DNA of 63,262 nt, filler included, from Ministeria vibrans ATCC 50519 (GCA_943704425.1; 10 parts of 10 records of this genome joined end to end with filler, not necessarily neighbours in it); one strand, 5' to 3'. Counted from the whole stretch's first letter, positions 33,400 to 54,460 are shown. The notes: generated by a model from the letters alone, not told the origin. Program-made: numbers and translations.

Positions 33400-36300
33400 T
33401 TAAATGGCACACACAGCTGCGTGCACCGCACGCAAATCCCCATCGTTCAGCACCATGGCTCGTTTTTCTCCCCCTCCAGCCTTGGGCAGACACACACGCG
33501 CCGCAAGCACTCGTGCACGCTGCTCCGCAATGAGTCGCGACACATTCACAACACGACTCGGTCCCTTAACACGCTGCACCAGCGTCCGGTACGTCTCGCT
33601 GGCGCGCGTTCGCAGTGCCGCATTAATCGCGACCGACTCGGCATAGACTGCTCGCGCTCGTCGTCGCTCCACCGCATTCTCATCCGAAATATCCACCACT
33701 CGCGGCACAATCGCACGACCATTCTCCAGTCCCTTCAGCACCTCAAGCACAGTGGAGTCCCCGCTCTTCTCTTGCGTCGGAGGCGGCGGCGCTACAAACA
33801 CCAGCGGTGGCAGCGCACGCGCCATGTCGGCCGACAGCTGCGCTCGCAACTGTGCACACTCCCGACGGCACACACGCACAGCCGCCACAAGCGCACGCGT
33901 GTTGCTTGCCACCACACTCGCAGTGGAGGTCATTGATAACATTGAAGAGGTAGTGACACCACCACCACCACCACCACCACCACCACCACCAGTACTGCTA
34001 CTATTACTCGTACTGCCTCCTGCACCCTCTTCACCGCCCTTCTTGGTGGCCAGCATTTTCCGCTTCAGCTCCTTGTTGCTCACTTCCATCTCCTCCAGCT
34101 CCTGCTCGCGCGTCTCCAATGCCTCCTCCAACTCACGCAGCTCCCGTCGCAGCACCTCCACCTCATCCGCATTGGCCGCACTCGCCTCCATCTGCGCTCG
34201 CTCCTCCCGAACCGCCTTCAGTCGCGTCTCAAGCGCACTGGTGCGCGTCGCTGCCTCATCCAGCGCCTTCACCTTCTTCCGCAACTCAATATTCAGCACC
34301 TGCATCTCTTCCTCCTTGCTCCGCATGCGTCCTCGCAGCGTCTCATTCTCACTCAACTCGGCGCGTACCACACCACTCCGTTCCACCACCGCCACCGGCA
34401 CAACCACCGCTCCTCCTGCGTCGCTCATACCGCCACTGGTAGTCGTCTCCTCCTTCTTCTCCTTGCGCGCAAACTCACCGCTCATCAGTGCAGCCGTAAA
34501 CGACTTGACATGCTTGTCGGTGCTCGCCAGTGCGTGTCGCACACTCTCCATCGCATCCTCGGCAGAGCTCTCAAGCACTAATGCAAATCCAGCGCCAATG
34601 GTCGCATCGTCCACTGTTGCTGCGTCGTCCACCTCGACATTGCCACTCCCATCACCATTCACCACGCTCACCACCACTGAGCCAATGAGTCCCGCCGCAG
34701 AGGCAAACTCACGCGCAAAACCAGACGCAATGTCACGCTTCTCCTTGGTCAGTGCAATGTCCATGCACAGTCCAAGTTCGCTGCGCGCGCCCTCGGCCGA
34801 CTCGCTCGCCGCGCCCGCCCCCATCAGCGCAGGCAGTGTTGTAAGTGCCTCGTCCACATCGGTCGCCTCCAGTCCACCCACGGGTTGCATGGTGGTAGCA
34901 AGCGCAACACGACGAGCACGGTCGCGCAAACTGCTTGTGTGCATCACCACCGCCTCAATCAATGACCCAACCGCACTCTTCGTTGTCGCCGCTTCGTCTT
35001 CCGCATCCCGCAACTGTGACAACACACGAACCTCACAGAGTGTGCACGCTGCGCTCGACTGCAGTTCATCCGCCGCAATCGCAGTGCGCTCCGCGTCACT
35101 GAGTGCTCCCGTGTGCTCTTCGCCCAGTCGCATCAGCTGTCCAGCGCTCTTTCGCACATCCTCACTCGCCCCCTGTCCCGCCTGCAACACGGCAATCTCG
35201 CTTAGCTCGCGTCGCTTTAGCAGGTACAACAGACTGTCAATGCGTCGCTCGTGCACCACCACCTCGTCACGCTGCGCCCCCAACTGCAAAAATGTCTCCA
35301 CCGGCGCACGCGCAAGCCCACCCGCAATGCGTGCTGCCGCCGAGCGCAATGCCAGCAGGCGACGACACATCTCAGCGCCCGCCGACACGCGCATAAGGAG
35401 GCGACGCGAGCGAATCGTTGTCTCACTACTGCTCGTAGTTGTAGTGAGATGAACTCCAAACTGCTCGCACACCTGCTGCACTGCAATGGTGCACTTGACG
35501 GCAATGCGTCGCACCACCAAAAGCGCCGCAAGTGCCGTCATGTCGCACGCATACTGCTCGCTCGGCAGGTATGCCTGTAACATGCGCACCTGCGCCGCCG
35601 TCTGTGTCGCATCAAGACGCAACAGTTGCAGTGCCACTGCACGCTCGTTGGCACGCGCCACGTCCGTCTGCAGACGCGCGTTCTCGGCAAGCGCCGACTG
35701 AGCTGCCGCACGCACACGCGCTTGGTCCGACGTCTGCTCGGCACTCGTCGACTGCAGCGCCATCAGTGCGTCGTTGGTGCGAACCAAACGCTCTTGGTAC
35801 TGTCGCACCTGATCGCGCATGTCTCCAAGCTCACGCGTGCGCTGTTCCATCTCCCGCTCCAAATGACTCACACGCACATCCTTTGAGTCCACTTCAAGAC
35901 GCAGCTCGCGCTCCGTCTGCGAGTGCGCCTCCTCCAGCTCGTCCGACAGGTCCTTGAGCGCATCCAAGTCGTCCACTTGCTCCTGCAAATCCCGCACACG
36001 CTCCTCCAACTCAAGGTTCTTGCGCGTAAGCGACTCTACAATCGCCTCGGCACCCAACGCATCGTCCACTTGGTCCTTGAGGTCCTCCACAGCCTCCTCA
36101 GCCGTCTCCAGCGCAGTCTTGAGCGTCCCGCACTGCTCGCGCAGCTGCCCCACCTCAACCGTCTGTGCCTCCAGCTCGCGAATGCGTGCTTCGTTTTTCT
36201 TCTTGTCCGACTCACTCACATCTCGCAGTCGTACCAGCGCCTCTTTCAGTCGCTCGCACTGTGTTTCCAATGCCTTGTTCGTCACGGCGGCTCCATCGCC

Positions 36301-37360
36301 TCCTCCGCCTCCACCTTCTTTCTCCTCCTCTGCGCGAATCTCCGCCTCCAGCTGCAACTCTTCCACTTGTTCCTCGAGCAGTCGTACTCGCTCGGCGGCC
36401 GCCTCCGCCTGCTCTTCTGCCATCTCCTTGTCGAGTGTCGCCATCTCGACAGTCTCCCCAAACGTGGCAAGTTCCTTCTCCGCCGTGGCGCGTCCCTCTT
36501 TGGCCTCCTTGGCCTCTTTACGCGCCGCCTTGAGCTCCTCCTTGAGCGTCGCCTGAGCCGCCACCCACTGTTGCTTGTAGCTGGCCACTTGTTCGTACTG
36601 AACACGGTACTTGTCCAGTTCCTTGATGGCCTTGCGGTACTGTTCGCAGCGCGCCTCCAGTTGTGTGACTCGCGACGCATCACTCGACGTCGCATTGGCA
36701 GGCGTCTCGTCCGAGGCGGGCGATGGCTCATCGGCACTGGAGGAGGCAGGGGGTGCCTCGCTAGGCGTTGCAGGGGCGGGCGTGGGTGTGGGAGCGGCGA
36801 CGGCGACAGGTTCAGTGGCAGCGGCAGTTGAGGCCGTTGGCGCTGGCGTTGGCGCTGAGGACGAGGCCGCAGCGGATGCCGCGGGTGCCTCAGCCTCGTG
36901 GATGACATTCACTTGCGTCTGGCGCACAAACATGCCATAGAACTCGCCTTCTTCTTGTCCTTCCTGTTAAGACAAAAAAAAAATAAAAAAGTCAAAATGT
37001 TTCAAATGATTTCAACGATCGGTATTTCGTGTTGAGGGAGCTTAATCGACACGCCAACGCGTCAATGACCGGAGTAAGAGATGATCCTGGGATAGGGATC
37101 AAAAAGAGACCGTGGATAGACGCCATTCCGGCGAGAGTGGAGCAAGAGAGAGTTTTTGGAAATGGGTTCGTTTTTGTTCTTACGCGACATTTGAAGTAAC
37201 GCTTCTCGTTGACGACGCCGTTGTTCTTGCCATGGGGCTCGTCAAGCTCGACGCCGACCCACTTGCCCGTGGCAAACAGGGTGGGGCCGCAGTAGCGGAC
37301 AGTTCCGCGCTTTCCCTTGACTTCCACGCGCATCCCGGCGCGGATCACAGAGTCGCTCAT
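33400..37360 (-). CDS. DCTN1: Dynactin subunit 1 (p150Glued)
   Basis: CAP-Gly ([20 protein letters not shown]); [12 protein letters not shown]; [10 protein letters not shown]; [12 protein letters not shown]; long coiled coils. Confidence 0.95.
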
Positions 37361-37588
37361 GACGGTCGGCGAGGGTGCAGCGGCGGTAGTGGCTGTGCGA
37401 GAGTTGAAAAAAAAAAGTAAATGATATGTCATATGAGCAATGAGTTGACAACAGTTTTCATGTCTTTGTTATTTTGTTTGTTTCACACACTGACACACAC
37501 ACACAGTTTTGTTGACTTTACGTTTGACGATTCTTTGATTCATAAAAAACCCACTCTTTCTGCTTTCATTCACTCTCATGCACGCTCT

Positions 37589-40500
37589 CTAACAATCGGA
37601 GGAGGAGGCGACTCCGTTGCCTCGTCGGTACAGAAAAATGTCTCCGTCGTTGACCATTCCCGCCGTCCAGTCCCTCCAAATGCGCCCCACCAGCGCAGCC
37701 TGCAGTGCATCGGTCGGGTCCAGCATCCGCAGTCGTCGTCGCAGCTCAACCGCACTCACATACGTCTCATCCTCGTCAAACACCTTTCCTTTGCCCAGTG
37801 CGAGAATGAGTAGCTCAGTCAGGCGCGTCACACCCCCACTCGCAAAGCTGCTGGCGTCGCGCAGTGCGCTCGTAATGGCCTGGCGTGCGTACCCTCGAAC
37901 GGGCGCAGTGCGCTCGGCCATGGTCAGGTCCTCCTCTGGCACAATCAATGCTCCGCTGTTGCAAAAGTCGCAGAACACCAACACGTTGCCGCCCAGCCAG
38001 AAGACATCGTCGCGGAGAATGGTGGAAAGACTCAAACGTGTCAGTGGACCACCAACAGTCTCACGAGCGTCACTCAGCAGCAGACCACCCCCACTGTCCT
38101 CGGCACCATGCCCAATCAGATGCACAATCAACAGCGAGTCCTGTCCCGCACCCACTCCCGCCTTCGTGGCCAACCGTGTCGTCGCATCCACAATCAGACT
38201 CCTCCTCACTGCGTCACCCTTCTTCGAATCCACCACCGTCTCCACATCACATCCTCGATCGCCCCACATCTTCGCCAGCTGACGAACACTCTTCTGCACC
38301 TCAGGAAGATCGTCAAAGTCCTTCAGCGCAGCATTGCCCGACGACGCATACCGACTCACTCCCACGATCAACACTGACGCATGCGAGTAGATTCCCATTG
38401 CTACACCAACAAGAACGTGTCAAAAACAATTACAATCATATCAAACTACAAATACTAACGAATCGTACCTTCTTGCTTGCACCACCACCTCTTCAGCTTC
38501 AAATTGCACATCCGCTTCTGTCCATCAAAGCGTTTCAGCTCCGCATTCACAACCTCCGCATCGCGATAGTCTTCGGGCCGCTCAGCGACACTCTTCGGCG
38601 CAAACAGCGGATGCAATGGATGCGTCTCGCCCACTGCCAGTGCAAACGGATGCGCAGGCACCACCACAGCACGCCCGCGCCAGCCCCACCGCAGAGACCG
38701 CGTCGACTCACACACAGTCTCAACCAGTCGAGTCCACGTCCGCTCGCACTTGATCGCCTTCTCTCCCAGCATCTCCACTCGAATGAACGACTCGTTGCTG
38801 TTGAGGCGCAGTCGCACAGACTCACACCCGTCCATCGTCAGCGCATTCGTGCATCGTTGCGTCGCTTCAATGTGAATGGCAAGTGGACACGCCCGCCATA
38901 GGGCCACCACAACCAGATGGAAGGTGGCCAGTGACACTGGAAGCTCCTCCCACTTGCCAGTGTCCGCATTGTGCGTCATCTGGTACAGGAACAGCACTGC
39001 GGGCGCCGGTGGTGCGTTCGCCACAAAGGGCGCACTCTCAGGCAGCAGCATCGGGATGAGAAGGTGGTCATGATGCGCATGCACCAGACTGAGGTGCTCC
39101 AGACACGCCATGAATGCTGACACGTCCGTCACATCTGCACCTGCCAGCACAGGGTCGCCGCTGCTCTTTGTCTTGGCCGCCGTCCACACCAGCCACTCCG
39201 CCACCTCCCGACAGAATCCCGCCTCGGACCGTGTTTTTGACTCGTCCAGAGACACAAGCAGGCGCTCGGTGCGCTTCACGTCGACCGAACGACCCGCCTG
39301 CGTCACCTTCGTCAGCATTTCCTTGGCACGCGCACTCCCCGCTCGTTCCCACCGTGCCATCACCACCGAACACAGCAGTTCAACCGCCGAGATCAGCCGC
39401 GGAATGTCAAACACAATTGTGTCCTTCTCGTCCAGCGACTGCGCCGTCGCATCTTGGCGGCACACCACAATGTCCGCCGCAGACTCAAGGTACGGCACAA
39501 GTTCGGCCCGCACCTTTGCCCCGTCCGGCATAAGATCAGTCAACATGACGGATGGCTCAGTGCTCAGCTGGAGCGTGTCAAGGTGTTCGACAGAGGAGAG
39601 CAGTGGAATCTCGTTCAGTCGGGCGGCACGACCAAGCAGGTCCTGTGCACACACATACTCCATCGGCAGCTTGCGTCGTCGCGGTGCGACGTGCAGTGCC
39701 TGTGTGAGTGCGCTGAAGCCCACCTTCTTGCTGCTGCCCACCTGGAAGAACGGCAGAGCAGAGTCGGCAGGCTGCATCAAGTGATCGCCCAACTGCAACC
39801 CAACGAGATGGAACACTCGGTCGGAGACGGCCGCCAGCAGGTCGACGGGAACTGTGTTGTTGGGGAATGTGTCAACGTGAGTGCCCACAATGAGCACACG
39901 GAAGTATGAGTCGTCGGTCGAGGGCACTTGGTGCGCAATGATGTGGGCCCACTTGGACAGGTGTTCGTACTGTCGCTGTGCCTTGACTGGATCGTCCATG
40001 ACAGACAGGTCAAATACAAGCAGGTAGGCCGACTCGGAGCCCATGAAGAGCGCAGGAAGCGAGTCAAACATCTCTTCACCTAACAATAACAGCATCAATA
40101 GGAGTGGAAGACAGTGTTCTTTGTCGTCTGCGCTATACCGGCAAAGTCAAATGTTTCAAGGTCAATGTGGCCCTCGCGCAGTTCAGACTCGAGAAGCGTG
40201 TGCACGGCCGACATGGTGACTGAACTGGGCGTGGGGGCGGCCGGTGGTGGGGTGGATGGGCACGGAGAGGATGGTGATGATGAGGGAGAAGTGGTCGTCG
40301 AGGACGGACTGAGCAGCCTCTTGAACCACTGCAAAACCGAGGTCGCTGTTGGACCGACTGCTTGAGCGGCAGGCTGTGATGTCTGCTGTGCAGTCGTGGT
40401 GGTGGTGGTTGTCGTAGTGGTTGTCGATGGTGTGGTCTGCTGCTCGTCCTCCTCCGCTCGTTGCGCCCTCCAATGAGACTGGCCAGGCGGTGTTCCTCTT

Positions 40501-42381
40501 GCGGCACTGCCTCAAACACGCCTGTCGCCCCATCCAGCACCATTCGCACTCGCTCCAGTCGAGTGGCCACTGACCGATCTGCCTCCGTTGGCAGTGTCTG
40601 TCCGCGCAGTGCACACAGCAGGGCCGTTTTGCCCGCCAGCACTGCCCCCAGACACAACAGTTTGATCGTGCGTGGTTCTACTGATCCTCGCTCAATGGCC
40701 GCCTCAAATGCCCTCTGGTACACGCTGGGAATCAAGAAAAGAACGGCATGTTAAAAACGAGAGAGATGTATTCGTCTGTTGTAGCACTCACGTTTTGACA
40801 AACTGCGCAATGGACCATCGGTGGACTGTCTTGTCTGCACAGTGGACAATCAGTGTGTTCCCATCCGACGAGAACTCAATTGTGTCCACTCTAAACAAAC
40901 ACACAAAAGCGAGTGAGTGAGTAAGTGATGAAAGGAATTGAACACACAAACCTGGAAGGAACTGCAAATTGTGTGAGAATGGTTCCTTTGAATCGGGTCC
41001 ACACTTTGATTGTTCTGTCACCTGATCCACTGTAGATGGTGGTTCCGTCTCGAGACACAGCGACTGAGAGAATATGACTAAAAAGCAGAAACAAGCACAT
41101 ATTAGACAGGTCTTCTCTGCACAATTCAACTCACTTCGTGTGTTCCTTCAATGTCCGCTCGCACTCTCCAGTCAGCACATTCCACACTTTCACCGTCAAG
41201 TCGAATGAGCCACTGATGACGTGTCGTCCGTCAAAGGAAAACACTGCTGACCGGACAGGACTGCAAACGAAGAATATAAGAGACCAAACCACACGGAATA
41301 GTGATTGAGTGACTTACTCAGAGTGTCCACTGAGTGTCTTGAGACACTTTCCACTCACAACAGACCATATTTTGATTGCGTCGTCGGATGACCCACTGAG
41401 CACTGTTTGTCCATCAAATGAGAATGCCACGCACAGCACATAACTGTAAACCACAAAACAATCAATACATCAGAAGAAATTACACTCTTTCTCGATTTGA
41501 ATTACTTTGAATGTCCCTTAAACGTGATTTCACACTTTCCCGTTTGACTGTCCCACAGTTTCATTGTGTGGTCGTCTGAGCCACTCAGTATTTTCGTTCC
41601 GTCCGGTGAAAATCTCACTTCTCCTACAACACTGAAATGCATAAGAATGAACATCAACACACAGAATCACTCTTACTGTGTGTGGTCTTTCAGAATGAGC
41701 AGACACTCTCCCGATTGACTGTCCCACACTCGAACTGTATCGTCAGGACTGCCACAGACCAATTTGAGTCCATTGGGTGAGAAATCAATAGAACAGACAG
41801 CACTACACAAATGAATATTAGACACAGTGACACTCAGTCGGGTATCTCTCTCTTTCTCTAACCTTGTGTGACCAGTGAGAGTGAGAGTGCACTTTCCACT
41901 GTGCATTTCCCACACTCTGACTGACCCGTCCTCTGATCCAGTGACCACTCGCAGTCCATCGGGAGACACTCTCACACTCGACACACCACTAAAAGAAACC
42001 CAAAGATGGTCAGACACCAATCTCCATTGTGTTCATGGTAATTGAAAATGAAATGTCCAATTTGTGCACAACACAACGCACAGAAAGAACGGGTATTCTT
42101 ATTCGTCTCGTTTCAACTTACCCTTCGTGCATGAGTGTTCTGACACACTTTTTGTCTTTCACAGACCACACTTTGGCTGTGCTGTCGCCTGATGCACTCA
42201 CAACCCACTGCTCGTCTGGAGACAGTGTAACTTCATAAATGAAACCAGAGTGACCAGTGAGAGTGACCACTCCACAGTCAACCTGTTCCCCTCCTTTGCC
42301 GTCCACTTCCACCAGCGCAACATGCGATCCTTTGTCAACAGCGACCAGTGAGTCGTCAACAGAGTGGCGAATAGCGGACAT
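37589..42381 (-). CDS. WD40 - Roc GTPase - COR - caspase-like (Peptidase C14) protein; 11 predicted exons; one apparent frameshift near 40470
   Basis: About 8 WD40 repeats. G1 GAVLAGKT, G3 DFAG (spliced), YLLVFDLS, G4 IVGTHVD, then a COR-like region. C14 motifs [17 protein letters not shown] and VFCDFCNSG. All ten GT-AG junctions were checked manually and keep frame. Confidence 0.8.
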
Positions 42382-43875
42382 TCAGTTCTGAAAGAGAAAC
42401 CCCATTTGTTGAGTGATCATAGAACAGTTGAGCACGACACCCTCCCGGTCCAACCGATACTTCACCGCTCTTCCACACCCCCACTCTCTCCCACTCTCTA
42501 CAGCGACAAGAAGAAGAGTGTTCTGTTTTGGCCATATTTTATCCACTGAATGACAAACAAACCAAACCTAATAATAACAAACACACTCTCACCCATGTCC
42601 CACCACCAATACACACACTGTAGCCCAACCATGCCATATGGGCTGTCCCTCACCACAATATCGTCTTCTAGAATTAATTCCAGTTCGACTCGACCGAAAA
42701 CTACATTCGGCCTACCGCCCAACACACACACACAATGCGATCCCACGGCGTCCCAGCAGCCCCCGCACCCCCCACGGCACCCCCCTGCCCCGTGCCGCAC
42801 ACCAATAGCAAGCCCTGTGGCTCTCTGTCGACTCCTTCAAAATTTTAAGGGCTCACCCACACACAAAACACAGACAAAAACGCACAAGGNNNNNNNNNNN
42901 NNNNNNNNNNNNNNNNNNNNNNNNNNNNNNNNNNNNNNNNNNNNNNNNNNNNNNNNNNNNNNNNNNNNNNNNNNNNNNNNNNNNNNNNNNNNNNNNNNNN
43001 NNNNNNNNNNNNNNNNNNNNNNNNNNNNNNNNNNNNNNNNNNNNNNNNNNNNNNNNNNNNNNNNNNNNNNNNNNNNNNNNNNNNNNNNNNNNNNNNNNNN
43101 NNNNACCCCCCTGCCCCGTGCCGCACACCAATAGCAAGCCGTGTGGCTCTCTGTCGACTCCTTCAAAATTTTAAGGGCTCACCCACACACAAAACACAGA
43201 CAAAAACGCACAAGGACTCTGTTCACTCCCGCCAAACGCAGCGAACCACCCACCTCAATCCAGTCTCTTGTGGTGACGGCACCGGCGGCGAGTATTGCAC
43301 AAACTGTAAGCACAGAAACGAAAATGTTTAGTTTCAGCCACAAAAACAAAAACGACTCTGCGGATACTCTGACGAAAATCACCCAGCCAACACGTCAGTC
43401 TGGTCAGAGGCACTCAGCAATCGAGACGAACAATTGAGAGAATTTTTTGAATGATTTTTTTTTTTGGAATTTGTGAAGAAAAAGTCGCCCGATATTTTAT
43501 TAATTATTATTAGTGATCAGTTCACCCTTAAAAATAAACCAGCCCTGGCTAGGTATCCCATATGACCTACCTACGTATTTAAGAGCCAATGTATAGTTGT
43601 GACGACTGTGGCGTCCTCACGGAGGAGATGACCCACCTTTTAACCAAACTCCCGCGACAAAATAGTAAACAATACAGTTGTGAAGTTATATCAGCTGATA
43701 TCCCACCCTACTTTCCCCTTGCCTTGGTCTGGGGATGCATCTTATTAATCACATGACGAGAAAAAATAACAAAGAAATTATATTTTATTGATAAACAAAA
43801 CGCACTCATATGACTCTCCGATTCTCTCCGATTCTCTCAGCACACTCACATTCTCTCCCTCTCTCTTTCAGTCTC

Positions 43876-46800
43876 TCATACATCCGAGTCAAACGTCGGA
43901 GTCAAATCCGACAATGTGAACGCCTGTACATTTGCTGGTTCAGCAGCTCCCGCAAACTCATTTCCACCCGTAGGCCTAATAGGAACAAAAAAAAATGAGT
44001 ACCACAGTCTCTCTTACTATGTCTCTCTCTCCCTCTCTTACTTGAACATGGAGCTCATTCGAAGCATTCCAGCACCGCCCATAGGATCACTATCCACGTT
44101 GTAGAAGGGGTCCGCGGCGGGCGCTCTCCCTCTTGACCTGTACAAAAAACACAATAAATATGAGACACGACAAACAAATTTCAAGAATAGCATACTTTGA
44201 AGAAGAGGAACCGGACGACTTGGGCATCGATGGTAATGAGCAAGAGCAAGGACAGGCGCACGAGGCACACTTCTCCTTGAGCTGTTCACGGTGCTTGAAG
44301 CAGAAGAAGGCAAGGATAGCGGCAACAACGAGGCCAATGACGACGCCCGCGGCAATGCCTGCGGCGCTACCGCCCGACGACGGCTGTGTGTTGATCTGAC
44401 AGAAGTCGCCGGCAAAGGGTGGCAAACATGTACAGTTGTAGCCGTTGACAGTGTCGTTGCAAAGACCGCCGTTGAAGCAGGGCGACGACGCGCACTCGTC
44501 CACCTCCACTTCGCAGTTGGTACTGTTGAATCCACTCGCGCACATGCAAATGTACTCGTCCGTGCCAAACGCATTGACGCACGTCGCGCCGTTGGTGCAC
44601 GGCGACGACAGACACTCGTCGACGTCCAACTCGCAATGGGTGCTCATGTAGCCGCTCGCACAGCTGCACGTGTAGCCGTCCACTCCGTCTGTGCAGGTAG
44701 CGCCGTTCTGGCACGGGCTCGACGCGCACTCGTCGACGTTGGTCTCGCAGTTGGTACCCGTGAATCCACTGGCGCATGTGCACACAAAGTTGTCCACGTT
44801 GTTCGTGCAGGTGGCGCCATTCGAGCAGGGACTCGACGCACACTCGTCCATGTTCGACTCGCAGTTGGTACCCGTGAACCCTGAGGCACAGGTGCACGTG
44901 AAGCCGTCCACATTGTCCGTGCAGGTAGCACCATTCGAGCAGGGGCTCGACGCACACTCGTCCATCTCCGACGCACACACAACTCCTGTGAAACCACTGG
45001 CGCACGTGCACATGTAGCCGTTCACCTGATCGGTGCACGTTGCGCCGTTGGTGCAGGGACTCGACGCGCACTCGTCAATATCCGACTCGCAGTTGATACC
45101 GGTGTAGCCGGCGGTGCAAATACACGTGAACATGTCAACATCGTTGACACAGGTGGAGGCAAACTGACAGGGTGACGAGTCGCATTCGTTGACGGTAAGC
45201 ATGGCAAATTGGGCAGACGAAAGCGACGTCTGCGCACACAGAGCAGTGGTACTGCCGGTACACAAGGCGTTGCGACGGCGACCGTTGCTCGACGGCGGAG
45301 CGTCAGCAAGGGTCCAGGGACCCGGATTGTTCAGCGGAGACGACGAGTAGATGAGTGCATCGGAGCTGGGCGGAGCACCGTTGCCCGTCTCAATCATAAT
45401 CGTGATGGGCGAGCTAAAGTCGGTGCCATTCAGCTCGGGCACGTTGATCGAGACAATCGTGCTGTTATCGGCAACTTCCGCATTGGAGGGCAGCGTCTTC
45501 TCTTCGCCAGTGGGTATGTTGTTCACAAGAAGAGTGCCGCCCGCGGGAATGACACCCTCCGGCACGACAATCGTCACCTTGTCCATGACAAAGGTGCCGC
45601 CAGCACCCGTCGAGTTGAAGCCCGTCAGCTCACAGTTGACACCCACGTAGCCCAAGACGCAGCTGCACAGGAAGCCGTCCACCACGTCGGTACAGGTACC
45701 GTTGTTAGAGCACGGACTGGACGCACACTCGTCGACTTCCGACTCGCACGTGACGCCCGTAAATCCTGACGCACACGTACACGTGAATCCGTCAATGTTG
45801 TCGGTGCAGCTACCTGCATTGGTACACGGACTCGACGCACACTCGTCCATCTCCGAGCCGCACTGCACCCCAGTAAAACCACTGGCACAAGTACATGTAA
45901 AAGCGTCCACGTTGTCGGTACACGTTGCGCCATTCGAACAGGGACTCGACAGGCACTCGTCAAGTTCCGTCTCACACTGCACACCGGTGTAGCCCGACGC
46001 GCACACGCACTCAAACAGGTTCGCCATGGATCCCTCAGAGCACGTGGCGCCATTCGAGCAAGGGCTCGACGCACACTCATCCATGTCCGACTCGCAGTTG
46101 ATGCCGGTGAAACCGGCGGCACACGAACACGTAAAACCGTCGACATTATCTGCGCAGACTCCGCCGTTCGAGCAAGGGCTCGACGCACACTCGTCCACTT
46201 CCGACTCGCACATGACACCAGTAAATCCACTGGCACAGGTGCACACGAAGAGGTCAGGCATGGAGCCCTGCGAGCAGGTGGCACCGTTCGAGCAAGGGCT
46301 CGACGCGCACTCATCCATGTCTGACTCGCAGTTGATGCCAGTGAAGCCGGCGGGACAGGTGCACAGGAAGCCGTTAATCACATTGGCGCAGGTGGCGCCG
46401 CTTGAGCATGGACTCGACACACACTCGTCCTGATCAGCATCGCATACGGTGCCGAAGAAACCGTCAGGACAGGCGCATGTGAACCCATCGACATTGTCGG
46501 TACACGAACCACCGTTGGAGCACGGCGACGAGATGCACTCGTCCAGTTCCGTCTCGCACACCACACCCGTGTAGCCCGAGGCGCACGTGCACATGTAGCC
46601 ATCGACATTGTCGGTGCACGTCGCACCGTTGGAGCACGGACTCGAGCCACACTCGTCAAAGTCAGTCTCACATGTGATGCCCACAAATCCACTGTGGCAG
46701 GCACAGGTAAAGCCATCCACAATGTCGGTACAGGTGCCCGCATTGGTACACGGACTCGACGCACACTCGTCCATCTCCGAGCCGCACTGCACCCCAGTAA

Positions 46801-49800
46801 AACCACTGGCACAAGTACATGTAAAAGCGTCCACGTTGTCGGTACACGTTGCGCCATTCGAACAGGGACTCGACAGGCACTCGTCAAGTTCCGTCTCACA
46901 CTGCACACCGGTGTAGCCCGACGCGCACACGCACTCAAACAGGTTCGCCATGGATCCCTCAGAGCACGTGGCGCCATTCGAGCAAGGGCTCGACGCACAC
47001 TCATTCATGTCAGNNNNNNNNNNNNNNNNNNNNNNNNNNNNNNNNNNNNNNNNNNNNNNNNNNNNNNNNNNNNNNNNNNNNNNNNNNNNNNNNNNNNNNN
47101 NNNNNNNCACTGCACACCGGTGTAGCCCGACGCGCACACGCACTCAAACAGGTTCGCCATGGATCCCTCAGAGCACGTGGCGCCATTCGAGCAAGGGCTC
47201 GACGCACACTCATTCATGTCAGACTCGCAGTTGATGCCGGTGAAACCGGCGGCACACGTACACGTAAAACCATCGATATTATCTGCGCAGACTCCGCCGT
47301 TCGAGCAAGGGCTCGACGCACACTCGTCCACTTCCGACTCGCAATTGATGCCAGTGTAACCGCTGGCGCAAGTGCATGTAAATCCGTCCACGTTGTCGGT
47401 GCATGTAGCGCCATTCGAGCAGGGGCTCGAGGCACACTCGTTGTTTTCCGAGTCACACACAATGCCAAAAAATCCGCTGGCACACGTACAGGTGAATCCA
47501 TCGACAATGTCGATACAGGTGGCCCCATTGGTGCACGGACTCGAGGCACACTCGTCCATGTCCGACTCGCAGTTGACACCGGTGTAGCCGCTGGCGCAAG
47601 TGCATGCAAAGTTGTCGACGTTGTCGGTACAGGTGGCACCGTTGGAGCACGGGCTTGAGGCACACTCGTCCATGTCCGACTCGCAGTTGACACCGGTGTA
47701 GCCGCTGGCGCAAGTACACGTAAAGCCGTCCACGTTGTCAGTGCATGTGGCACCATTCGTACACGGACTCGAGGCACACTCGTCCATTTCGGAGCCACAG
47801 AGAACCCCAGTGAAACCACTCGCGCACGTGCACACATATCCATCGACTCCGTCGGTACAGGTGGCGCCGTTTGAGCACGGACTCGACGCGCACTCGTCAA
47901 CGTCCGTCTCGCACTGGATACCGACAAAGCCGCTGGGACAGGCGCACGAGAAACTATCAAGGCTCTGCGAGCAAGTACCAGTATTTGAACAGGGACTCGA
48001 AGCACACTCGTCAATGTCCGACTCGCAATGAACGCCCGTGTAGCCGGAAACACACTGGCAAATAAAGGCGGCAGGCACATTGACGCAGGTCGCAGAGTTG
48101 ACGCACGGTGACGACGCACACTCGTCTGAGTCCGCCTCGCATTGAATACCAAAGAAACCGGGCGGGCAAGTGCACTCGTAGGCGCCAGGCGTGTTGGCGC
48201 ATGTACCGCCGTTGGAGCAGGGCGACGACAAACACTCATCCATGTCGGACTCGCAGTGCGTGCCAGTGTATCCCTGTGCACACACACACATGTAACCGTC
48301 CACCTGATCGGCGCACGTCGCACCATTCGAGCAAGGACTCGACGCACACTCGTCAATGTTGGTCTCACAATCGAGGCCCGTGTAGCCAATGACACAGGTG
48401 CAAGTGTAGCCATCAATCATTTCTGAGCAGGTTCCACCATGCGCACACGGCATCGAGGCACATTCGTCAACCTCAACGCCACACTGCACACCAGTGTAGC
48501 CCGAGGCGCACGTACACACAAAGCCATCAACATCATCCGCACAAGTGGCGCCATTCGAGCACGGACTCGACGCACACTCATCCACATTGGTCTCGCAGTT
48601 GATGCCAACAAAGCCCGAGGCGCACGTACACCCAAATCCATCGACATTGTCCGAGCAAGTGGCACCATTGGAACATGGGCTCGACGCGCACTCGTCAACG
48701 TCCGACTCGCAGTTGACACCGGTGTAGCCGCTGGCGCAAGTACACGTGAACGCGTCCACGTTGTCGGTGCATGTGGCGCCGTTGGAACACGGCGACGAAG
48801 CACACTCGTCCATTTCGGAGTCACACTGTACACCGGTGAAGCCACTGGCACAAACACACACATAGCCGTCAACGTCGTCGTTACAGGTGGCGCCGTTGGA
48901 GCACGGGCTGGACAGGCACTCGTCGACATTGGTCTCGCAATTGACGCCGACATACCCACTGGCACAAGTACATGTAAAAGCGTCCACGTTGTCGGTACAC
49001 GTTGCGCCATTGGAACACGGACTCGATGCGCACTCGTCCATTTCAGAGCCACACTGTACACCGGTGAACCCACTTGCGCACGTGCACACAAATCCATCGA
49101 CATCGTCAGCACAGGTGGCACCATTGGAGCATGGACTCGAAGCACATTCATCCACGTTGGTCTCACAGTTGGTGCCGACAAAGCCGCTGGCGCACACGCA
49201 CGAGAAGCCCAGAAGTGAGTCCTGACAAGTGGCACCGTTGGAACAAGGGCTCGAGGCACACACCTCCAGGTCGGTCTCACACAGCGTACCGACTGCACCG
49301 GGCGGACAGGTGCATGTAAAACCATCGATGTTGTCGGTGCACGTGCCGGTGTTCTGGCACGGACTCGAGGCACACTCGTTGTTTTCCGAGTCACACACAA
49401 TGCCAAAAAATCCGCTGGCACACGTACAGGTGAATCCATCGACGATGTCGATACAGGTGGCCCCATTGGTGCACGGACTCGAGGCACACTCGTCCATGTC
49501 CGACTCGCAGTTGACGCCGGTGTAGCCGCTGGCGCAAGTGCATGCAAAGTTGTCGACGTTGTCGGTACAGGTGGCACCGTTGGAGCACGGGCTTGAGGCA
49601 CACTCGTCCATGTCCGACTCGCAGTTGACACCGGTGTAGCCGCTGGCGCAACNNNNNNNNNNNNNNNNNNNNNNNNNNNNNNNNNNNNNNNNNNNNNNNN
49701 NNNNNNNNNNNNNNNNNNNNNNNNNNNNNNNNNNNNNNNNNNNNNNNNNCATGCAAAGTTGTCGACGTTGTCGGTACAGGTGGCACCGTTGGAGCACGGG

Positions 49801-52800
49801 CTTGAGGCACACTCGTCCATGTCCGACTCGCAGTTGACACCGGTGTAGCCGCTGGCGCAACTGCATGCAAAGTGCCCGTGGTTGTCCGAGCATGTGGCGC
49901 CGTTGGAGCACGGCGACGAGGCACACTCGTCCATGTTGCTCTCGCACACAATGCCGGTGAAGCCACCAGCGCAAATACACGAGAAGCCATCCACTCCGTC
50001 CGCGCAGGTGGCGCCATTGGAGCACGGCGAGGAAGCACACTCGTCAATGTTGGTCTCGCAGTTGACACCCGTGTACCCACTGGCGCAAGTGCATGCAAAA
50101 CCATCGACGTTGTCGGCGCACGTCGCGCCATTGGAGCAGGGGCTCGACGCGCATTCGTCCATCTCCGAGCCACACACGACACCGGTGAAACCACTCGCGC
50201 AAGTGCACACGAATCCATCCACTCCGTCCGTACAGGTGGCGCCATTGGAGCAGGGGCTTGAGCTGCACTCGTCAATGTTGGTCTCGCAGTTGGTACCGAG
50301 GTATCCGCTGGCACACGTGCACGCAAAGCCATCCAGGTTGTTGATACACGTGGCGCCATTCGAGCAAGGGCTCGACGCACACTCGTCAATGTCCGACTCG
50401 CACTGTGTGCCCGTGTAGCCAGGAACGCAGTCGCACGCAAAGGCACCTGGATTGTCGTTGCAGGTCGCACCATTGACACAGGGCGACGAAGTGCACTCGT
50501 TCACATCCGTCTCGCACGACTCACCCACAAAGCCGGGAGCGCACGAGCAGCTAAAGCCCTGATGAGAATCACTGCACGTGCCACCGTTGGAGCAGGGCTG
50601 CGAAGCGCACACGTCCAAGTCAAATTGACACTGGTCGCCAGCGGTACCGCCAAGACAGTTGCACGTGTACTCGTTGATTCCGTCGACACAAGTGCCGGCG
50701 TTACGGCAGGGCGATGAAGCACACTCATCGACATTGGTTTCGCACATGAGTCCCACAAAGCCGGGAACGCAAGCGCACGTGAAGGAATCGAGAAGGTCCG
50801 TGCAGGTACCACTCGACTGACACGGCGACGAATCGCACTCGTTGATCTCCACGTCACACAGAGTCCCAGTATAGGCACTGCTGCAAGTGCAAGTGTATCC
50901 ATCGACCACGTCGATGCATGTGGCGCTGTTCTGGCATGGGCTTGACGCACACTCGTTCACGTTGGTCTCGCAGTTGACACCAAAGAAGCCGGAGGCGCAT
51001 GAACAGGTGAAGCCATCCACGTTGTCCGTGCATCCAGCTCCGTTCGAGCAAGGGCTCGACGCACACTCGTCCACGTCCGATTCGCAGTTGACACCAGTGT
51101 ATCCGCTGGCGCAAGTACATGTGAACGCGTCCACGTTGTCGGTGCACGTGGCGCCGTTGGAGCACGGTGACGAAGCACACTCGTCCATGTTCGATTCGCA
51201 GTTGACACCAGTAAACCCACTCGCGCAAGTACATGTGAATCCATCGACATTATCAGTGCAAGCGCCACCGTTGGTACACGGGCTCGACGCGCACTCGTCC
51301 ATCTCCGACCCACAATTGACACCGGTGTATCCGCTCGCGCAGGTGCACACAAAGTTGTCCACATTGTCAGAGCAAGTGGCACCATTGGTGCACGGGCTCG
51401 ACGCACACTCGTCCATATCCGACTCGCAGTTCACACCAGTGTAGCCACTCGCGCAAGTACACGTAAAGCCGTCAACGTTGTCAGTGCATGTGGCACCGTT
51501 TGAGCATGGGCTCGAGGCGCACTCGTCCACCTGCGACTCACAGTGTGTGCCCACAAAGCCGCTGGCGCACGTGCATGAGTACGAGTTGGTGCCGTCGACG
51601 CAGGTGCCGCCGTTGCTGCACGGCTGCGAGACGCACTCGTCAATGTTGCCGTCACACACGGTTCCGGCAAAACCGCTGTCGCAAATGCATGTGTACGAAT
51701 TGATGCCGTCGGTACAGGTGCCGCCATTGGCACACGGTGTCGAAGCACACTCGTCGACATTGGTCTCACAGAGAACGCCCACAAACCCGTTGAGGCACGA
51801 GCAAGAGTAAGAGGTGATACCGTCGACACAGGTGGCGTCGTTCTGGCAAGGGCTCGAGGCACAGTCATCAATGTTCGTGGAGCAGGTGACGTCGGTGAAG
51901 CCGGCGGCACAAGTGCACATGTACGAGGTGACACCATCAAGGCAGGTGGCGCCATTGGCGCACGGGTCGGAGGCACAATCGTCAATGTTGTTGCCACACA
52001 GGTTGCCCTGGTAGCCGGCAGCGCAGGTGCACGAGAAACCATTGACAGCATCAGAACAGGTGGCACCGTTGCGACACGGCGACGAGTTGCACTCGTCGTT
52101 GTTGACATCGCAAAGGGTGCTTGAGAAACCTGAAGCGCACGTGCACGTAAAGCCGTTGACGTTGTCGGTGCAGGTAGCACCATTGGTGCACGGGCTCGAC
52201 GCGCACTCGTCAATGTTGTTGCCACAGAGTGTGCCATCGTAGCCAGAAGCGCAGGTGCAGGTGAATCCATCGACCTCGTCGTTGCAAGTGGCGCCGTTGA
52301 GGCAAGGAGTGGACGCACACTCGTTTGTGTTCGAACCACACCTGGTACCAAAAAAGCCCGAAGCGCAGATGCAAGAGTAGCCGTCGACCTCGTCGGTGCA
52401 GGTGGCGCCGTTGGAGCAAGGCGACGAGTCGCACTCGTCGTTGTCGATTTGGCAGAGGTTGCCTGAGAAACCCGAGTGGCACGAGCACGTGTAAGAGGTG
52501 ACACCGTCGTTGCAGGTTGCGGCATTGCTGCAGGGAGACGAATCACAATCGTCAATGTTTGTGGAACACAGGGTGTCGGTGTAGCCCGGGACACAGGTAC
52601 ACGAGTAGCCATTGACTTCGTCGTTGCACGTCGCACCGTTCTGGCAGGGGTTCGAAGCGCACTCGTTGACGTCGGTCGAACACGTCGGGCCGGCGTAGCC
52701 TGCTGCACACGCACACGTGTACGACGTAACACCGTCGTTGCAAGTTGCACCGTTGGCGCAAGGATCGGAGGCGCAGTCGTCAATGTTGGTCAAGCACGAC

Positions 52801-54460
52801 ACATCCGTGTAGCCAGAGGCACAGGTGCAAGAGTATGAGTTGACGCCATCGTTACAGGTGGCACCATTGGCACACGGGTCGGAAGTACAGTCATCGATAT
52901 TATTGGTGCAAGTGGTGCCGCTGAAACCAGTGCCTGCGCAGTTGCAGGTGTACGAGTTGACACCGTCATTGCAAGTACCACCATTCTGGCACGGGCTCGA
53001 CACGCACTCGTCAATGTTGGTCGAGCAGGTCGCATCAGTGTAGCCAGGAGCACAAGTGCAAGTGTACGAGTTGACACCGTCATTGCAAGTGCCTCCATTG
53101 GCGCACGGGTCGGAAGTGCAGTCATCGACATTATTGGTGCAAGTGTTGCCGGTGAAGCCCGTGCCTGCGCAGTTGCAGGTGTACGAGTTGACACCGTCAT
53201 TGCAAGTGCCTCCATTCTGGCACGGGCTCGACACGCACTCGTCAATGTTGGTCGAGCAGGTCGCATCAGTGTAGCCAGGAGCACAAGTGCAAGTGTACGA
53301 GTTGACACCGTCATTGCAAGTGCCTCCATTGGCGCACGGGTCGGAAGTGCAGTCATCGACATTATTGGTGCAAGTCGTGCCGCTGAAACCAGTGCCTGCG
53401 CAGTTGCAAGTGTACGAGTTGACACCGTCATTGCAAGTACCACCATTGGCGCACGGGTCGGAAGTACAGTCGTCGTCGTTGACGGCGCAGGTATCGCCGC
53501 TGAAGCCAGACACGCAACTGCAGGTGTACGAGTTGACACCGTCATTGCAAGTGCCTCCATTGGCGCACGGGTCGGAAGTGCAGTCGTCGATATTATTGGT
53601 GCAAGTCGTGCCGCTGAAACCAGTGCCTGCGCAGTTGCAAGTGTACGAGTTGACACCGTCATTGCAAGTGCCTCCATTGGCGCACGGGTCGGAGGTGCAG
53701 TCATCGACATTATTGGTGCAAGTGTTGCCGGTGAAGCCCGTGCCTGCGCAGTTGCAGGTATACGAGTTGACACCGTCATTGCAAGTGCCTCCATTGGCGC
53801 ACGGGTCGGAAGTGCAGTCGTCGTCGTTGACGGCGCAGTTATCGCCGCTGAAGCCAGACACGCAACTGCAGGTGTACGAGTTGACACCGTCATTGCAAGT
53901 GCCTCCATTGGCGCACGGGTCGGAGGCGCAGTCGTCGATATTATTGGTGCAAGCGTTGCCGGTGAAGCCCGTGCCTGCGCAGTTGCAGGTGTACGAGTTG
54001 ACACCGTCATTGCAAGTGCCTCCATTGGCGCACGGGTCGGAGGCGCAGTCGTCGATATTATTGGTGCAAGCGTTGCCGGTGAAGCCCGTGCCTGCGCAGT
54101 TGCAGGTGTACGAGTTGACACCGTCATTGCAAGTGCCTCCATTGGCGCACGGGTCGGAGGCGCAGTCATCGACATTGCTGGTGCAAGTGGTGCCAGTGAA
54201 GCCCGTGCCTGCACAGTTGCAAGTGTACGACTCGACGCCGTCATTGCAAGTGCCGCCATTGGCGCACGGGTCGGAAGCGCAGTCGTCAATGTTCACCTCG
54301 CAGAAATCGCCGTTGTATCCATCGACACATGTGCACACAACATCCCCCTACACACACGTACACACACACACACACACACACACAAAGAGATACAGCCATA
54401 AGTGGGGGCACGAAGAATAAGAGGTGACCCGGCGGCTTGGCCAGGCGTGCAGTGGCGACA
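43876..54460 (-). CDS. Giant single-pass EGF-repeat receptor (~80 Ca-binding EGF repeats, ZU5-like insert, TM helix, short tail); Notch/Crumbs/fibropellin-like; N-terminus uncertain, two N gaps
   Basis: DECASSPCSNGATC....F.C.C..G(Y/F).G..CE repeats across ORFs 48417..54338, 47005..50040 and 44090..47143. TM IAAGVVIGLVVAAILAFFCF. Two spliced tail exons end FDSDV*. Confidence 0.88.

Follow-up and report, generated by a model that had tools for sequence, protein, structure and literature searches.

A spliced gene of Ministeria vibrans joins a WD40 propeller with a hypervariable face to Roc-like and caspase-like domains: a candidate non-self receptor

The window that we analyzed is a stretch of 63,262 nucleotides (nt) from Ministeria vibrans ATCC 50519 (GCA_943704425.1), in which parts of 10 records of the genome are joined with filler and positions are counted from the window start. 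On its minus strand, between an ATG at 42381 and a stop codon at 37589, lies a gene whose WD40, Roc-like and caspase-like parts are confirmed by RNA contigs to belong to one expressed transcript. Allele comparisons indicate that the predicted binding face of its propeller differs between strains in the pattern of fungal non-self receptors, making the product a strong candidate for an immune or allorecognition receptor. On balance, we lean toward reading this one expressed gene as encoding a cytosolic three-part receptor of ~1370 residues, in which a WD40 sensor, a Roc-COR switch and a caspase-like effector would act together.

A single spliced transcript carries the three parts

A preliminary description of this region, made from the DNA alone, had proposed a single gene whose GT-AG introns join in frame the pieces into which the open reading frame (ORF) list divides it: WD40-like pieces, a P-loop piece, a 547-amino-acid (aa) ORF and a 269-aa ORF. 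By reading the strand and checking the boundaries with a script, we found 11 coding exons, with all introns of the GT-AG class. The start codon is set at 42381 by an in-frame TGA immediately upstream (42382-42384).

We placed contigs of four public runs (X1, X5, X9 and X19) on positions 37400-42700, using assembled contigs rather than raw reads. Spliced forms were present in X1, X5 and X9, which are RNA runs from three studies, and the introns were kept in X19, a DNA run. Three introns had been singled out as joining the parts: 40725-40791 (AC/C GTG TAC), between WD40 and Roc; 40080-40138 (DFAG/EEMF), across which the G3 motif is rebuilt; and 38401-38468 (KQE-A-MGIY), between the COR-like region and the protease. 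Each of these is GT-AG and is spanned by spliced contigs of X1, X5 and X9, with the joints 40724/40792, 40079/40139 and 38400/38469 present in every one of the three runs. The COR-like and protease exons are linked by contigs of 1237 and 1486 nt, the P-loop exon is connected to WD40 exons by a contig of 997 nt, and the WD40 introns are spliced out in RNA contigs too. Every domain boundary is thereby crossed by a spliced contig, and no one contig covers the gene in full. All coordinates given in the preliminary description proved right and the RNA junctions agree with its gene model, which needed a frame correction of 2 bases, described below.

These data bear on the possibility that two or three neighboring genes (for a WD40 protein, a GTPase and a metacaspase) were joined artificially, by chance frames or in chimeric contigs. 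Such an artifact would be aided by RNA evidence that consists of assembled contigs, none as long as the gene, but we consider it very improbable, as all domain boundaries are crossed in three independent studies at exact GT-AG sites with the frame kept, and no stop or start lies between the domains. In addition, the same co-linear order of domains is found on the metagenome scaffolds L004, L005, L006 and L007, and in two homologs, P0011 and P0022, no intron interrupts the COR-protease and G3 joins.

The propeller varies at positions that correspond to a fungal recognition surface

The identity of the N-terminal part as a WD40 propeller is certain. Six ORF pieces, which together cover repeat exons 1-7, were scanned and scored 32.5-59 bits against a Pfam PF00400 cut-off of 27, and the repeats align in register. 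Six consecutive exons (2-7) have the same length of 126 nt, each encoding one 42-residue WD40 repeat and being entered and left in phase 2; their pairwise nucleotide identity is 0.41-0.60.

We compared four alleles of the gene, namely the window copy and the copies on metagenome scaffolds L001, L004 and L007, which share 96-98% identity with the window across the gene and differ from it by only 1.3-1.5% in the introns. In the WD40 exons of these alleles, amino-acid changes are numerous, and a single codon often has two or three altered bases. The ratio of nonsynonymous to synonymous change (dN/dS, Nei-Gojobori) was 1.36-2.05 in the WD40 part and 0.15-0.33 in blade 8 with Roc G1 and in the Roc-COR and protease regions. 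Numbered in the exon-register repeat, the variable positions are 42, 1, 2, 4, 20 and 22; the first four correspond to the three residues preceding the conserved Val after GH and to the residue next to follow it, and the last two are the x positions of SxDxT.

In the WD40 repeats of the fungal proteins HET-E, HET-D and HET-R, the hypervariable positions are 10, 11, 12, 14, 30, 32 and 39 (PMC12222747), and the hot positions observed here equal this published set shifted by ten. When the published set was used as the prior, 30 of the 49 codons at HET-E-type positions were found to vary among the four alleles, in comparison to 14 of 244 elsewhere (Fisher 9e-18). Several hot sites show three or four states, six alleles of exon 1 vary at the same positions, and the RNA contigs carry further different residues at junction codons. 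Within the propeller, diversifying selection appears to be confined to predicted top-face repeat positions. The alleles are also mosaic repeat by repeat, a pattern suggestive of recombination between exons.

Two further features of the WD40 exons were noted. The intron at 41803-41862, between exons 2 and 3, contains no in-frame stop, and a mechanical ORF (41673-42020) reads through it; the intron is removed in RNA contigs. Moreover, GC content at third codon positions (GC3) is 0.49 in the WD40 exons (40792-42381) versus 0.61-0.71 in the Roc, COR and protease exons (37589-40724), with values of 0.65-0.67 in neighboring genes and 38% GC in the introns. A different history of the repeat exons is one possibility that may account for their low GC3.

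The central region resembles Roc and probably contains a COR domain

To examine the domains downstream of the propeller, we searched exons one at a time against family, sequence and fold resources. The Roc scores obtained in this way stay under curated cut-offs, since an insert interrupts the domain and its coding sequence is divided among three exons, which were searched separately. The P-loop piece matched TIGR00231 (small_GTP) over positions 3-52 with an E value of 0.0018, and in the Protein Data Bank (PDB) it matched Rac and Ras only at E 0.1. The piece following G3 gave weak matches to Pfam Ras (59-124) and Roc (67-119) that are co-linear with the match of the P-loop piece. The best Roc match of all, at E 2.9e-4, was in a homolog.

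When an 8-sequence profile of exon 10 was compared with the PDB, LRRK2 Roc was the top match and accounted for 7 of the 9 matches, with FM..Y..V.DLS and VGTHLD aligned. The G1, G3 and G4 motifs of Roc are present, and GxxxAGKT, DFAG and VGTHxD are conserved in paralogs and homologs. Exon 9 is conserved in L004, L005 and L006, and the G3 region that an intron divides in the window is continuous in the homolog P0022. The co-linear matches, while sub-threshold, support a Roc identity for this domain, and LRRK2 Roc is its best solved match.

The ~400 residues that follow the G domain are conserved, with a mean column identity of 59%. The ESM Atlas gave 0.96 and 198 shared features for the whole of exon 10 and 0.94 for the COR part (residues 135-536) alone, and with either query the 10 best family-bearing neighbors were all COR-A/COR-B/Roc clusters. 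A COR domain is likely but not proven, similarity in a protein language model being its sole positive basis.

Searches of every exon returned no match to a STAND family (NB-ARC or NACHT), and phmmer searches of single exons against the PDB gave nothing useful. As the central switch is a small GTPase, the protein is neither a STAND NLR nor an apoptosome in the strict sense, and the label "Roco-apoptosome" in the preliminary description stands as an analogy only.

The C-terminal exon is predicted to adopt a caspase fold

The C-terminal exon is, as modeled, a caspase/paracaspase/metacaspase fold with a His-Cys dyad. In Pfam, the window copy of exon 11 matched CHAT at 7e-4 and Peptidase_C14 at 0.03 (14.4 bits versus a cut-off of 21.4). 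Eleven homologs of the protease were found (46-95% identity), and 7 of the 12 family members match PF00656 at E <= 0.01, with a best value of 3.4e-07. The NCBIfam entry NF047832, "caspase, EACC1-associated type", was matched at 1.9e-08 over nearly its whole profile (34 bits versus a cut-off of 140). A family profile recovered Arabidopsis metacaspase-4 (AtMC4), placing LIGHG on SGHG and DFCNSG on DSCHSG.

Among the 12 homologs, neither His97 nor Asp144 varies, and Cys146 is nearly invariant, being missing only in a truncated homolog. A structural model built from the 12-sequence alignment had a predicted local distance difference test (pLDDT) of 74.9 and a predicted template modeling score (pTM) of 0.83, in comparison to a pLDDT of 35 for a single-sequence model. 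Over residues 1-267, the model matched MALT1 (Z 17.5), caspase-4 (16.5), caspase-9 (16.0) and AtMC4 (15.8), with GSU0716 and c-FLIP also among the fold matches; the Foldseek E value was 2.6e-08. The model places the predicted catalytic residues at strand ends, His97 after beta3 and Cys146 after beta4. The earlier proposal of a C14-like protease with a His in LIGHG and a Cys in DFCNSG was thus sound, both residues being present and conserved in a protein with this fold match. An Asp stands two residues before the Cys (DxC), which suggests, on the pattern that we presume to carry over from metacaspases and MALT1, cleavage after basic residues (Arg/Lys).

A two-base frame break lies in a variable insert within Roc

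The coding sequence (CDS) read directly from the window is 4124 nt long and closes early, and is therefore not open. Within exon 9, the P-loop frame (40723-40460) and the DFAG frame (40457-40140, open) differ by 2 bases, and it is this 2-base difference, not an intron, that shifts the frame between P-loop and G3. A 151-nt GT..AG candidate for an intron bridging the two frames was rejected, being of the wrong length class and having no RNA joint there. The 2 bases, at 40459/40460, are missing in RNA runs X1 and X5, in DNA run X19 and in metagenome scaffolds L001, L004 and L007. Without them the CDS is 4122 nt and encodes 1373 aa with a single terminal stop. In the L004 allele every one of the 10 splice-site pairs is retained and the ORF, of 4098 nt (1365 aa), is intact.

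The break sits in a Thr/Ser/Pro-rich insert that differs between strains by in-frame indels. This insert (40200-40457, minus strand) is a low-complexity segment of ~100 residues between Roc beta2 and beta3, flanked by conserved segments of 13 and 15 residues. It varies in length and sequence, with 33-nt in-frame differences between alleles, a different version in X9 and different versions in the paralogs. In scaffold L001 (1500-1520, corresponding to window 40256-40259), 4 bases (CCAT) of the same insert are missing and the frame is shifted before DFAG; L004, L007 and RNA run X5 match the window at this site. That a single low-complexity stretch holds two distinct frame breaks suggests problems of assembly or recurrent slippage, and the 2-base frameshift of the window reflects either a mistake in the assembly or a null allele specific to the strain.

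These breaks raise the possibility that the protease is a non-catalytic scaffold, or that in this lineage the gene is decaying into a pseudogene, with no present effector function. Besides the frame breaks in the window (40459/40460) and in L001 (40259), such a reading could point to the window C14 exon, which is below Pfam cut-offs, and to a caspase-fold pseudo-enzyme, c-FLIP, among the fold matches. However, six datasets lack the extra bases, L004 is fully open with its splice sites all kept, and dN/dS is 0.15-0.33 over Roc-COR and C14. As His97 is also invariant and Cys146 nearly invariant across homologs of 46-58% identity, and as the gene is transcribed and spliced in three studies, we judge a loss of effector function to be improbable.

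Relatives of the gene

Besides the near-identical alleles, several more distant copies were recovered. L003 (58% identical) keeps the order G3, intron, Roc-COR, intron, C14, and the paralogs L005 (61%) and L006 (55%) keep the full order of WD40 exons, P-loop, insert with G3, Roc-COR and C14. The pattern of repeat exons is the same in L005 and L006, with frames that change between repeats. L003, L004 and L005 come from one sample (ERZ23497376) and L001 and L006 from another (ERZ23497041), such that copies 54-65% identical in the Roc-COR exon share metagenome samples with a near-identical allele. This co-occurrence points to several paralogs in each genome or to several related species sharing a habitat, and the gene is probably one member of a small multigene family.

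The sources of all the relatives recovered are a single ENA metagenome project and Logan assemblies. An exhaustive representative search with the 536-aa exon 10 returned the exon itself and three fragments, with nothing outside the family, and a word-index search identified seven full-length relatives, to which a later profile search added none. No confirmed relative emerged when JGI metagenome contigs were scanned with the Roc-COR exon and, separately, with the protease alignment; a tblastn search of plasmids for bona fide bacterial Roco proteins gave one chance match only, and PADLOC gave no match.

Gene features and genomic neighborhood

The coordinates of the gene features are collected in Table 1. 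At the 5' end, the non-coding exon seen in RNA contigs extends ~100 nt further upstream, beyond 43285; the donor GAG/GTGGGT adjoins 43254, and loose ends of the RNA contigs sit at 42389. In RNA run X5, the acceptor at 42388-42389 has a second loose end of 136 letters that matches nowhere in the window and may represent an alternative first exon or sequence within the N gap at ~42800-43100.

Table 1. Features of the WD40-Roc-COR-caspase-like gene, in window coordinates.
Feature	Position	Strand	Basis
3' end of non-coding 5' exon	43254..43285	-	exact match of RNA contig loose ends to 43256-43285
Intron of the 5' untranslated region, GT..AG, spanning an assembly gap of N	42388..43253	-	RNA contigs and splice sites
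Coding exon 1: start codon, N-terminal segment, WD40 repeat 1	42122..42381	-	Pfam WD40 3.9e-09; RNA junction 41989/42124
Exon 2, 126 nt, phase 2, WD40 repeat 2	41863..41988	-	Pfam WD40, RNA contigs, model
Exon 3, 126 nt, phase 2, WD40 repeat 3	41677..41802	-	Pfam WD40, RNA contigs, model
Exon 4, 126 nt, phase 2, WD40 repeat 4	41506..41631	-	Pfam WD40, RNA contigs, model
Exon 5, 126 nt, phase 2, WD40 repeat 5	41318..41443	-	Pfam WD40, RNA contigs, model
Exon 6, 126 nt, phase 2, WD40 repeat 6	41135..41260	-	Pfam WD40, RNA contigs, model
Exon 7, 126 nt, phase 2, WD40 repeat 7	40952..41077	-	Pfam WD40, RNA contigs, model
Exon 8, 99 nt, short last WD40-like repeat	40792..40890	-	RNA junctions 40890/40952 and 40724/40792
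Exon 9: Roc G1, switch I, conserved 13-residue segment, variable Thr/Ser/Pro-rich insert, beta3, G3 start (DFA-G)	40139..40724	-	
P-loop GAVLAGKT (G1)	40625..40648	-	translation; GxxxAGKT kept in paralogs L005 and L006
Site of 2 extra window bases breaking the frame	40458..40460 (40459/40460)	-	absent from six other datasets
Exon 10: Roc remainder (G3 end, THVD G4-like, SSK G5-like) and ~400-aa COR-like region	38469..40079	-	
G4-like T-H-V-D	39871..39882	-	VGTHxD, with G/T/H/D invariant in 8 homologs; aligned to LRRK2 Roc VGTHLD
Exon 11: caspase-like domain (C14, clan CD) and stop codon	37589..38400	-	NCBIfam, Pfam in homologs, AtMC4 profile match, fold
Predicted catalytic His (LIGHG)	38108..38110	-	invariant; aligned to metacaspase-4 GHG; end of model strand 88-98
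Predicted catalytic Cys (DFCNSG)	37961..37963	-	aligned to metacaspase-4 DSCHSG; end of model strand 138-146

The minus strand carries all large genes of this piece. Upstream (43880-54338, minus strand) lies a very large gene that encodes EGF and calcium-binding EGF repeats; its largest ORF, of 1973 aa, matches Pfam EGF at E 4.8e-252. From the strand as read, it seems to encode one transmembrane segment and a short tail that is spliced, and to have a poly(A) signal near 43790. Downstream (33400-37432, minus strand) is a dynactin p150-like gene (Pfam Dynactin 7.4e-26), whose first exon is, by eye, CAP-Gly-like and starts ~150-230 nt after the stop codon of the receptor gene.

Discussion

If the product of this gene is a three-part receptor, its WD40 propeller, built with one repeat per exon and bearing a hypervariable top face, would be the ligand sensor. 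The Roc small GTPase and COR-like region would serve as a nucleotide-dependent switch and self-association module, and the metacaspase/paracaspase-like cysteine protease would be the effector. A variable non-self ligand, be it from a virus, a parasite or a conspecific, would bind the propeller, which would then release or re-orient the Roc-COR module. Following this change the proteins would dimerize or oligomerize, and the caspase-like domains would be activated by proximity, leading to proteolytic signaling or cell death. We infer the ligand, the GTP dependence, dimerization, protease activation and outcome from the established behavior of Roco dimers and of caspases and paracaspases.

The preliminary description had proposed a one-component immune or cell-death receptor. 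The single transcript, the WD40, Roc-like and caspase-like domains and the hypervariable face speak for that proposal; the COR part has neither a hidden Markov model (HMM) match nor a fold match.

Several points weigh against a receptor of this kind. Nothing in our analysis ties the gene to infection or cell death. All of the Roc matches fall under curated cut-offs, and the COR region had no Pfam or PDB match, even with the 8-sequence profile. The repeats, at 41-60% identity, lack the concerted evolution that is typical of fungal HNWD genes. The hot positions were noticed in the data first and matched to the HET-E set later, and the register match itself is one that we assume from the spacing and from the HET-E repeat. 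The copies that we treat as alleles come from metagenome scaffolds and may instead be very recent paralogs. Finally, the window copy is frameshifted, and L001 has lost 4 bases in the same insert.

A different role for an intact protein also deserves weight. The gene could encode a Roco signaling protein with a housekeeping or developmental function, for example in the cytoskeleton, trafficking, or mating or gamete recognition, in which case the WD40 face would track a fast-evolving endogenous partner and the protease would process a specific substrate without cell death. Roco proteins of Dictyostelium and animals function in chemotaxis, cytokinesis and trafficking, and positive selection also acts on sexual and mating recognition proteins. 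Brown-algal ROCO genes respond to many stresses and not only to immune ones (PMC11378527), and our analysis yielded nothing that links the gene to infection. On the other hand, a hypervariable repeat sensor that occurs together with an NTPase switch and a caspase-like effector, in a multigene family, matches the architecture described for conflict systems (PMC8195603), and among protein families the protease is matched best by a caspase of bacterial conflict systems. We regard a housekeeping or developmental role as rather unlikely.

The three-part receptor can be compared with several known systems. Bacterial conflict-system proteins with the architecture LRR-AP-GTPase(Roc)-COR carry at least 24 C-terminal effector domains, including caspase, TIR and trypsin, and AP-GTPase-COR is found in ternary conflict systems too (Kaur, Iyer, Burroughs, Aravind, eLife 2021, PMC8195603). 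They share with the protein described here an N-terminal repeat sensor, a central Roc-COR and a C-terminal effector, for which caspase is explicitly listed, and NF047832, the entry best matched by the protease here, is a caspase from bacterial conflict systems. In contrast, the gene here is eukaryotic and spliced, has WD40 rather than LRR repeats and carries a long low-complexity insert in Roc; the bacterial proteins are themselves known from computational analysis only.

Among eukaryotes, brown-algal LRR-ROCO genes (Ectocarpus and others), which are candidate immune receptors, have one LRR per 72-bp phase-2 exon, with exon shuffling and diversifying selection (Zambounis 2012; Teng 2024, PMC11378527). 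Some SAR members of the ROCO family have a C-terminal trypsin-like peptidase, IPR009003 (PMC11378527). The present gene likewise is eukaryotic, devotes one phase-2 exon to each of six repeats and shows diversifying selection on its repeats, but its six repeat exons of 126 nt encode WD40 rather than the LRR of the 72-bp exons, and its peptidase is C14 rather than trypsin-like. No ROCO protein with a WD40 sensor and a caspase domain is described in PMC11378527.

The fungal HNWD proteins (HET-E, HET-D and HET-R) have hypervariable codons at the same places in a 42-residue WD40 repeat; unlike the protein here, they use a STAND NACHT ATPase, a C-terminal sensor and a HET effector domain, and concerted evolution keeps their repeats nearly identical, whereas those here are 41-60% identical. 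The Apaf-1/CED-4 apoptosome resembles our candidate in its WD40 sensor, nucleotide switch and proximity-activated caspase, yet Apaf-1 has an NB-ARC STAND ATPase and recruits a separate caspase via CARD, whereas the present protein has a small GTPase as its switch and carries its protease in cis. MALT1, the metacaspases of plants, fungi and protists and the bacterial orthocaspase-like GSU0716 share the fold (Z 15.8-17.5), the His-Cys dyad and the DxC Asp; identity to them is 12-17%, and the domain here is fused to Roc-COR and has no death, Ig or p10-linker features. LRRK2, DAPK1, MFHAS1 and Dictyostelium Roco share the Roc motif set (GxxxxGKT, DFAG, VGTHxD), some members carry WD40, and LRRK2 Roc was the only solved G domain recovered by the profile search. 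LRRK2 differs in its C-terminal WD40, its kinase effector and a COR that HMMs recognize, which they do not here.

Literature searches for Roco proteins with a metacaspase, Peptidase_C14 or caspase domain led to bacterial systems only, and within the literature searched we found no eukaryotic WD40-Roc-COR-caspase protein that is expressed and has hypervariable sites like those of HET-E. The preliminary description had stated that no characterized WD40-Roc-COR-C14 fusion was known to it. This exact form was indeed not found; however, proteins of the kind are already described, with a caspase in bacteria and as ROCO in brown algae, and the novelty had been overstated.

In animals, plants and fungi, the receptors for innate immunity and cell death have STAND ATPases at their core. 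Genomic work on bacteria and brown algae has put forward Roco GTPases as another possible switch, but has offered no eukaryotic example in which a diversifying sensor and a death-type protease are joined. The gene here would be such a case, as it is expressed, has a clear catalytic dyad and GTP-binding motifs, both open to mutation, and has natural alleles that differ almost only on the presumed ligand face. It would allow tests of whether Roc-COR gates a caspase-like protease, of how protists use metacaspase-like enzymes, and of whether hypervariable WD40 faces are a general solution to non-self recognition, and it bears on how repeats, GTPase and effector are coupled in LRRK2-type proteins. 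Tentatively, and as a possibility to which we give a little less than even weight, a marine protist lineage may have here its one-polypeptide equivalent of the NLR or apoptosome, based on a Roco GTPase instead of a STAND ATPase, with a WD40 sensor diversified between strains at the very contact positions that fungal allorecognition NLRs use, symmetric shuffle-ready repeat exons and a fused caspase-like executioner. If so, this would be a third independent eukaryotic route to sensor-switch-caspase immunity, with bacterial AP-GTPase conflict systems as its likely ancestors.

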